Positions 26,889 to 28,073 of a stretch of 64,000 nt of DNA are shown here, in pieces (position 1 is the stretch's first letter; every line of letters starts with the position of its first letter). Under the pieces are notes generated by a model. The model did no database searches and was not told where the DNA came from. It was given only the letters and a program-made list of their open reading frames with translations. The DNA comes from Auanema rhodensis (taxonomy: Eukaryota > Animalia > Nematoda), in assembly GCA_964057225.1 (NCBI GenBank), contig OZ059896.1, forward strand, positions 10,292,001-10,356,000, given 5' to 3'. A program made the position numbers and the translations under genes.

Positions 26889-28073
26889 ATGGCATCATTG
26901 GCTAGATCTGGAAATATCGCTTCTAAAGTTGTAAGTTTTATTCTTCTGTCTTTTTTTTAAAATACAAATATCAGATTGCTGGTGTTAATCAGACGGCCAA
27001 CTTTTCTCCCGCTGCTATTTCTCAGAAGGTGTGTTTTATTATCTTCATTAGAATATTTTTTTTTTAGTCATCAGTTCATCAAAATGGTTTAACTGAATTC
27101 AAGAATACCGATTCTCTTCAGGCTGCTGTGCAACGTAGCGCCCAAAAGGGAGTTCTTAGCCATGGTATTGTCAACAAGGGGATAAATGGTATTATTTCTT
27201 GAATTAATAATGTTATTTTTTTATTGTTTTTCTTTAAGTGACTTCCTGTCGGTTTGCTCACACTGATGTATCTTTTCCTGATATGAACAAGTATCGTCGT
27301 GAAGTCACTTTAGACGCTGAAAAGCCAGCTAGAGAAACTGAAGATCAACGCAAATCTCTACCAGTTGCTGTATACTATGGAGGCAATTAATTAAAAAAAT
27401 ATAGTTCTAATCCTTTATTTTAGCTGGAGGTGTTATGTCTCTCTGGGCTGGAAAGGAAGTTGTTCAAACTCTTGTGTATTACAAGGCATGATTCTAAATA
27501 GTTTTATAATTATTATTGCTTGTTTTCTAGGCTATGGCTGCTGATCAAAGAGCTTTGGCATCTATCGAGATTAGCATGAGTGATATTCCTGAAGGTCAAA
27601 CTAAAACTTTCGAATGGAGAGGAAAGCCCGTCTTCGTCAAGCACAGAACTGCTGCTGAAATCGCTAGGCATATATAATTTTACAAAATAAATGTTTATCT
27701 ATTTCGATTTCAGAGAAAAATCTGTAGCAGTTGGAGATCTCCGTCATCCTCAACATGATGATGAACGTGTTCAAAAGGATGAATGGTCAGTAGTTATCGG
27801 AGTCTGCACTCATCTTGGATGTGTCCCTATTGGTTAGTTTATATATTTAGATATCTCTATATCATTCGTTTTCAGCTGGAGCTGGTGACTTCGGAGGGTA
27901 TTATTGTCCATGTCACGGTTCTCACTACGATGGTTCTGGACGTATTCGCAAGGTTTTTTATTTTAATATATCATAATATGTGATGTTTGCTTTGTTTGCA
28001 GGGTCCTGCTCCTCTTAATCTCCATGTACCAGCCTATTCCTTCAAGGAGAACGCTATTGTTATTGGAGCATAG
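26889..28073 (+). CDS. isp-1: Rieske iron-sulfur protein, complex III
   Basis: MASLARSG..., [32 protein letters not shown] and CPCHGSHYD Rieske boxes, GPAPLNL. Eight introns, three of them GC-AG. Confidence 0.97.

Follow-up and report, generated by a model that had tools for sequence, protein, structure and literature searches.

How do three consecutive introns in an essential gene come to begin with GC rather than GT, and does their removal call for a splice-site recognition that differs from that of other animals? The question is raised by isp-1 of Auanema rhodensis, which lies in the window analysed here (the whole stretch of DNA under study, 64,000 nucleotides long). The original prediction, made from the genomic letters, described introns 4 to 6 of this gene as GC-AG introns with weak donor context, and suggested that recognition of the 5' splice site may be relaxed or rewired in this species.

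The isp-1 coding region has nine exons and eight introns in a continuous frame and gives a product of 276 aa. The product is the Rieske iron-sulfur subunit of complex III (ISP-1/UQCRFS1): Pfam finds the UCR_TM helix (PF02921, E = 1.3e-12) in exon 4 and the Rieske 2Fe-2S domain (PF00355, E = 0.0025) in exon 8, and both Cys/His boxes, CTHLGC and CPCHGSH, can be read in the translations of exons 7 and 8. The similarity searches were run one exon at a time and not with the joined protein; the Rieske match is under the curated cut-off because exon 8 is only 25 aa long. There is a single copy of isp-1 in the 181-Mb assembly, and the transcript is SL1 trans-spliced just upstream of the coding region, at ~26861. 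The features of the gene are as follows, with a slash marking the borders of the introns.

26889-28075, plus strand: isp-1 (mitochondrial Rieske iron-sulfur protein) coding region, from spliced RNA contigs, open frame and Pfam
26931-26974, 27029-27067 and 27189-27238, plus strand: introns 1-3, GT-AG, donors GTAAGT, GTGTGT and GTATTA, from RNA joints and model
27383-27423, plus strand: intron 4, GC-AG, 41 nt, phase 1, GAG/GCAATT ... TATTTTAG/CT, RNA joint 27380>27422
27486-27530, plus strand: intron 5, GC-AG, 45 nt, phase 0, AAG/GCATGA ... TTTTCTAG/GC, RNA joint 27483>27529
27668-27713, plus strand: intron 6, GC-AG, 46 nt, phase 2, TAG/GCATAT ... GATTTCAG/A, RNA joint 27665>27712
27833-27875 and 27953-28001, plus strand: introns 7-8, GT-AG, donors GTTAGT and GTTTTT, from RNA joints and model

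From intron 1 to intron 8 the donors are GT, GT, GT, GC, GC, GC, GT and GT, all eight acceptors are AG, and the lengths are 44, 39, 50, 41, 45, 46, 43 and 49 nt.

Contigs from four public runs were aligned to positions 22400-28399 of the window. Two of the runs (X13 and X10) are RNA-like: their contigs are spliced and have an unaligned end before 26861 that carries the SL1 leader GGTTTAATTACCCAAGTTTG. These RNA contigs omit exactly 41, 45 and 46 nt at introns 4, 5 and 6, and the five GT introns of isp-1 were verified in the same comparison. The joints have a positional slide of 2, 4 and 2, respectively, within which an AG acceptor is obtained only with the GC..AG cut; for intron 5 this is the cut at +2. 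The DNA contigs (X4 and X6) were produced in two other studies and show zero differing letters over 25.6-28.4 kb, and therefore the T-to-C assembly or sequencing error that the original prediction had wished to see checked is excluded and the GCs are real in the DNA. Introns 4-6 are thus U2-type GC-AG introns, three in a row as proposed, excised in the mRNA at those exact borders. A U12 type is unlikely from the donors, as none of GCAATT, GCATGA and GCATAT is of the GCATCC type, and the acceptors are of the nematode TTTYAG type.

The further claim that no usable GT donor exists does not hold strictly. In-frame GT..AG alternatives do exist, but all of them lose at least four conserved residues, and no alternative GT donor for introns 4-6 is used in the RNA contigs. 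The GT at 27474, for example, is an in-frame alternative that shares the same acceptor; it was chosen by a GT-biased parser, deleting the residues VYYK. The junction of intron 4 is also confirmed by a genomic contig from another nematode (L043) that lacks this intron, where the open reading frame reads YYG-V-GG across.

The same contigs covered a MAP-kinase-like gene at 22800-24700 on the minus strand. Seven of its GT-AG introns, 41-151 nt long, are confirmed by RNA, and the lengths of the contig pieces point to two further short introns, together 90 nt, at 23750-24262. Rebuilding the neighbouring minus-strand gene at 24.8-26.5 kb from such piece lengths gave hundreds of equally good solutions and was given up.

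The strength of the splice sites was assessed with donor and acceptor weight matrices trained on ~550 predicted short GT introns from the window and 200 kb of contig C1. The lengths of the predicted GT introns form a sharp peak at 41-49 nt, and their acceptors have a nearly invariant T at -5 and C at -3. The GT donors of this species are of low information: among 454 predicted donors the exon ends in AG in 38%, +3 is A in 63% and +5 is G in 49%. When scored against these 454 donors with +1 and +2 omitted, the contexts of the GC donors of introns 4, 5 and 6 lie at the 91st, 98th and 66th percentiles, and they match CAG/GTAAGT at 5-6 of nine positions, compared with 4-6 of nine for the GT donors of isp-1. 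This runs against the description of their context as weak. All three GC donors read AG/GCA, and that of intron 5 has +5G besides the exon-end AG and +3A, while AG..A is found in only 19% of the 454 predicted GT donors. The acceptors of the three introns are strong and U-rich, at the 71st-89th percentiles (intron 4 at the 73rd, intron 6 at the 89th). The exon-side AG, constant in all three donors, and the very short introns, both named in the original prediction, were accordingly borne out. The GC donors thus show the compensation that is classic for GC-AG introns (PMC1557818) and are not relaxed sites.

A word search with isp-1 exon 6 retrieved genomic contigs of four other nematodes (L041, L043, L045 and L046). 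In L046, introns are present at the positions of isp-1 introns 3-6 with GT at all of them, the donors of introns 4, 5 and 6 being G/GTATTT, AAG/GTTAGA and AG/GTGAGT. Introns 5 and 6 are shared in position by Ancylostoma caninum (L045), where their donors are GT (GTGACT and AG/GTACAA), and the donor of intron 5 is also GT in L043 (GTGACT) and L041. Since GT is found at the orthologous positions in the relatives, the three GCs are derived, by T-to-C changes in old introns, and do not represent conserved GC sites.

The position of intron 6 itself varies among these nematodes. In A. rhodensis (27668-27713), L046 and A. caninum it sits inside an R codon in phase 2, and in L041:580-1328 and L043:956-1390 it sits 7 nt downstream, after ..EIA-R/I-EK, in phase 0. 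This offset, a shift that is not a multiple of 3 and that keeps the protein length, has the look of an intron that slid, or that was lost and regained.

If recognition had been rewired through variant snRNAs, as the original prediction suggested, a change might be expected in U1, U5 or U6. Every U1 copy read has the canonical 5' end, AAACUUACCUG, and there is no G7 variant. The 8/8 U1 loci read, most of them in a tandem array on C3, begin with AAACTTACCTGG, as do the 100 matches listed out of 117 in the genome to the pattern AAACTTNCCTGGCTGGG, and a genome pattern search for the G7 variant ACTTGCCTGGCTGGG, which would pair with +2C, gave 0 matches. The ACAGAGA box is present in the U6 array, and loop 1 of U5 is canonical (GCCTTTTACTAAAG, 280 matches at the U5 arrays). 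As the U1 5' end, loop 1 of U5 and the ACAGAGA box of U6 are all canonical, with no variant snRNA found, the proposal of rewired snRNA recognition is without support.

The snRNA genes of this species are arranged head-to-tail in long arrays. The U1 genes form an array at C3:15.86-16.12 Mb with a period of ~727 bp and >100 copies, and the U6 and U5 genes are in arrays of this kind at C1:6.375-6.386 Mb and C8:10.43-10.53 Mb. The U5 array has a period of ~371 bp and ~280 copies, and the U6 array a period of ~226 bp and at least 48 copies.

How frequent GC-AG introns are in the genome was estimated in two indirect ways, by an ab initio parse of 264 kb and by genome-wide counts of patterns at different spacings. 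The parse was made with a home-made Viterbi gene parser, which in its first calibrated run recovered 13/15 RNA-verified introns. With an equal 4-bit penalty on all non-GT donors it called 562 GT and 7 GC introns, together with 4 calls for GG and 2 for CC, which are equally frequent control dinucleotides. Six of the seven GC calls fall in the window and comprise the three isp-1 introns and three candidates in other genes.

5194-5232, minus strand: GC-AG candidate CAG/GCAAGT in a nucleotide-sugar transporter (srf-3-like) gene, parser call
9372-9413, minus strand: GC-AG candidate TAG/GCAATT in the Asterix gene (splicing rejoins the codon for R in ..IIRYKP..), parser call
29666-29737, plus strand: GC-AG candidate AAG/GCAAGT in a synaptophysin-like gene, parser call

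All three of these candidate donors read AG/GCA, and Pfam supports the gene identity for two of the three. Elsewhere in the window, G+C falls to 21-28% over ~14 kb (48000-62000), compared with 30-35% in the remainder.

With the bonus of GC raised to that of GT, there were 3.2 GC calls per 1000 dinucleotides in the 200-kb region, compared with 2.2-3.9 for the controls, that is, no excess of GC over the control dinucleotides in this region at equal bonus. This parse serves as an upper bound only, as ~3 false calls per 1000 dinucleotides mask classes below ~3%; since the GC calls equal the controls, a hidden GC class in the parsed sample is bounded to a few percent.

In the pattern counts, AGGTAT N{29,44} TTTTCAG gave 512 matches genome-wide, compared with 118 at the off-peak spacing N{79,94}. 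The corresponding AGGCAT series gave 141 matches at intron spacing, of which ~41 came from one dispersed repeat and ~99 were unique, and 61 off-peak; the AGGGAT control gave 47 at intron spacing. The GA and GG control dinucleotides showed no excess in the parse and pattern counts. The excess over background is ~400 for GT and 41-52 for GC, which means that ~10% of the AG/GYAT...TTTTCAG introns begin with GC. Scaling by the share of donors with AG..AT (7.5% of the GT donors, and 2/3 or 2/6 of the GC donors seen) gives a genome-wide GC-AG share of 1.2-2.4%, or 0.8-3.3% with counting error, an indirect estimate and not a junction census. The same scaling implies ~100,000 short introns, which is a plausible number. 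The published shares are 0.37% in C. elegans (PMC1557818) and 3.46%, 3.53% and 2.36% in Globodera rostochiensis, G. pallida and Rotylenchulus, respectively (PMC4901422). By this indirect estimate of ~1-3%, the share in A. rhodensis looks several-fold above that of C. elegans, a point in favour of the original reading, and it would be modestly raised inside the published nematode range.

Repeats complicated these counts. The shorter pattern AGGCA N{30,45} TTTTCAG was swamped by a 351-bp satellite and was replaced by the AGGCAT/AGGTAT series, and a reversed-pattern control, unreliable because of satellites, was replaced by the off-peak spacing and AGGGAT. Clustering of candidate introns by open frame or codon score was likewise abandoned, because random open frames and, in the C1 sample, a 259-bp satellite overwhelmed the result. 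Arrays of satellites, ~259 bp and ~351 bp in period, lie at C1:8.177-8.185 Mb (L021-L040) and C1:1.1-5.1 Mb, and the 351-bp unit holds AGGCAAAGACG...TTTTTCAG, which passes for a GC-AG intron when patterns are searched. There are 0 AGGTA..TTTTCAG matches in the first ~5.5 Mb of C1, which is probably gene-poor. The dispersed repeat (~41 copies, for example at C3:12.0-13.4 Mb) contains a perfect intron-like unit of 45 nt, AGGCATGAGATATGAGACAGTGGTCTGTGTATTGCTCCTTTTCAG, which may be the GC-AG intron of a multi-copy (transposon?) gene.

Could three GC introns in one gene of eight introns then be a matter of chance? The probability of at least three is ~5e-5 at a GC rate of 1%, 4e-4 at 2% and 2e-3 at 3.5%, and three in a row is ~ten times rarer than any three of eight. 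The genome holds ~12-16 thousand eight-intron gene-equivalents, so that ~1-30 genes with at least three GC introns are expected. Since isp-1 was picked from a whole-genome scan, its explanation as a tail case is adequate, though barely so at the low end of the rate. The outcome that the original prediction had set against its own reading, an ordinary genome-wide rate with isp-1 as a chance outlier, is therefore near to the result: the rate is ordinary to modest, and isp-1 would be the tail of the distribution.

We consider it quite likely that introns 4-6 are ordinary U2-type GC-AG introns that arose by T-to-C change at +2, are compensated at the site and together represent the expected tail of the distribution. 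A T-to-C transition at +2 of an existing GT-AG intron would have taken place three times in isp-1. The exon-end AG and +3A, and in intron 5 also +5G, would pair with the unchanged U1 5' end, and the very short intron and strong U-rich acceptor would also compensate, so that splicing would be efficient. Selection against +2C in good contexts is apparently weak in this lineage, judging from the proportion of GC, about a tenth, in the favourable class. The GCs may thus have been fixed in a nearly neutral manner and have come together in one gene by chance, with no need for special machinery.

Somewhat doubtful is the proposal that A. rhodensis represents a lineage with an independently evolved and markedly relaxed +2 constraint, in which ~10% of well-contexted donors are GC with U1, U5 and U6 unchanged. 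More unlikely still is a lineage-wide relaxation of 5' splice-site recognition in which +2C, and perhaps more, is tolerated beyond what is seen in other nematodes, isp-1 merely displaying it. Behind it would lie altered protein factors, or a recognition that leans more on intron definition and on the acceptor bound by U2AF. Consistent with such a relaxation are the GC proportion within AG/GYAT...TTTTCAG, an overall estimate several-fold over the C. elegans value (PMC1557818), the low information of the GT donors (exon-end AG and +5G each in fewer than half) and the three more GC candidates in the same window. However, the recognition elements of U1, U5 and U6 are canonical, the GC donors observed are strongly compensated in the classic pattern, the 200-kb region is without GC excess over the controls at equal bonus, and the overall estimate sits inside the published nematode range.

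GC donors might also be regulatory and weak by design, making isp-1 splicing sensitive to the availability of the spliceosome or U1, such that intron retention would lead to stops and NMD and tune how much complex III is made. A stop follows within 2-4 codons when any of the GC introns is read through, the three lie next to one another, and a published report describes alternatively spliced genes of several species as enriched for GC-AG introns (PMC2490688). We regard this as very improbable, however, as the fully spliced form is the only one in the high-depth contigs of two RNA runs (assembled contigs, in which minor isoforms with a retained intron or another donor may be missed), the GCs lack conservation, with GT at the same positions in the relatives, any AT-rich intron is expected to contain immediate stops, and the donor and acceptor scores exceed the species median. 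An artefact, whether a T-to-C error or the use of another GT donor in vivo, has next to no likelihood: in-frame GT alternatives do exist on paper, but the DNA contigs show the same letters in two further studies, and the GC cuts are exactly those of the RNA joints.

With introns 4-6 read as ordinary, compensated GC-AG introns, isp-1 offers a clean, RNA-verified case of GT-to-GC subtype switching at three ancestral positions in an essential and apparently highly expressed gene. It shows that +2C is well tolerated with an exon-end AG and +3A, and opens no new mechanism. Gene predictors that allow only GT would mis-model isp-1, as the GT-biased parser did in deleting VYYK, and perhaps 1-3% of introns genome-wide. 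If the +2 constraint were in truth relaxed, the cause would be at the protein level or population-genetic, and A. rhodensis, as a free-living species, would join the cyst nematodes as a second nematode system for studies on the spread of GC donors.

Among known systems, the kind of rewiring envisaged by the original prediction is that of Eurytemora affinis and Oikopleura dioica, which have GA/GG donors and a proposed variant U1 (PMC7072748). Unlike in those species, no variant U1 5' end was found here and GA/GG are without excess. Genomes of the Globodera type (PMC4901422) have a raised, RNA-supported GC/AG share, and resemble that of A. rhodensis in donors that otherwise follow the GT consensus and in predictors misled by a GT-only rule. 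They differ in that A. rhodensis is a free-living rhabditid and its share is an indirect estimate and not an annotation count, whose range of 0.8-3.3% straddles the ~3% that marks the Globodera type. Furthermore, the GC donors of Globodera are often conserved between sister species, whereas the A. rhodensis trio has GT in the available, rather distant relatives. In C. elegans and other animals (Sheth et al. 2006, PMC1557818), U2-type GC-AG introns likewise start with GC and end with AG, with the short U-rich nematode acceptor TTTTCAG. In contrast to C. elegans, A. rhodensis has three such introns side by side in one essential gene, and an estimated share of ~1-3% compared with 0.37% (PMC1557818).
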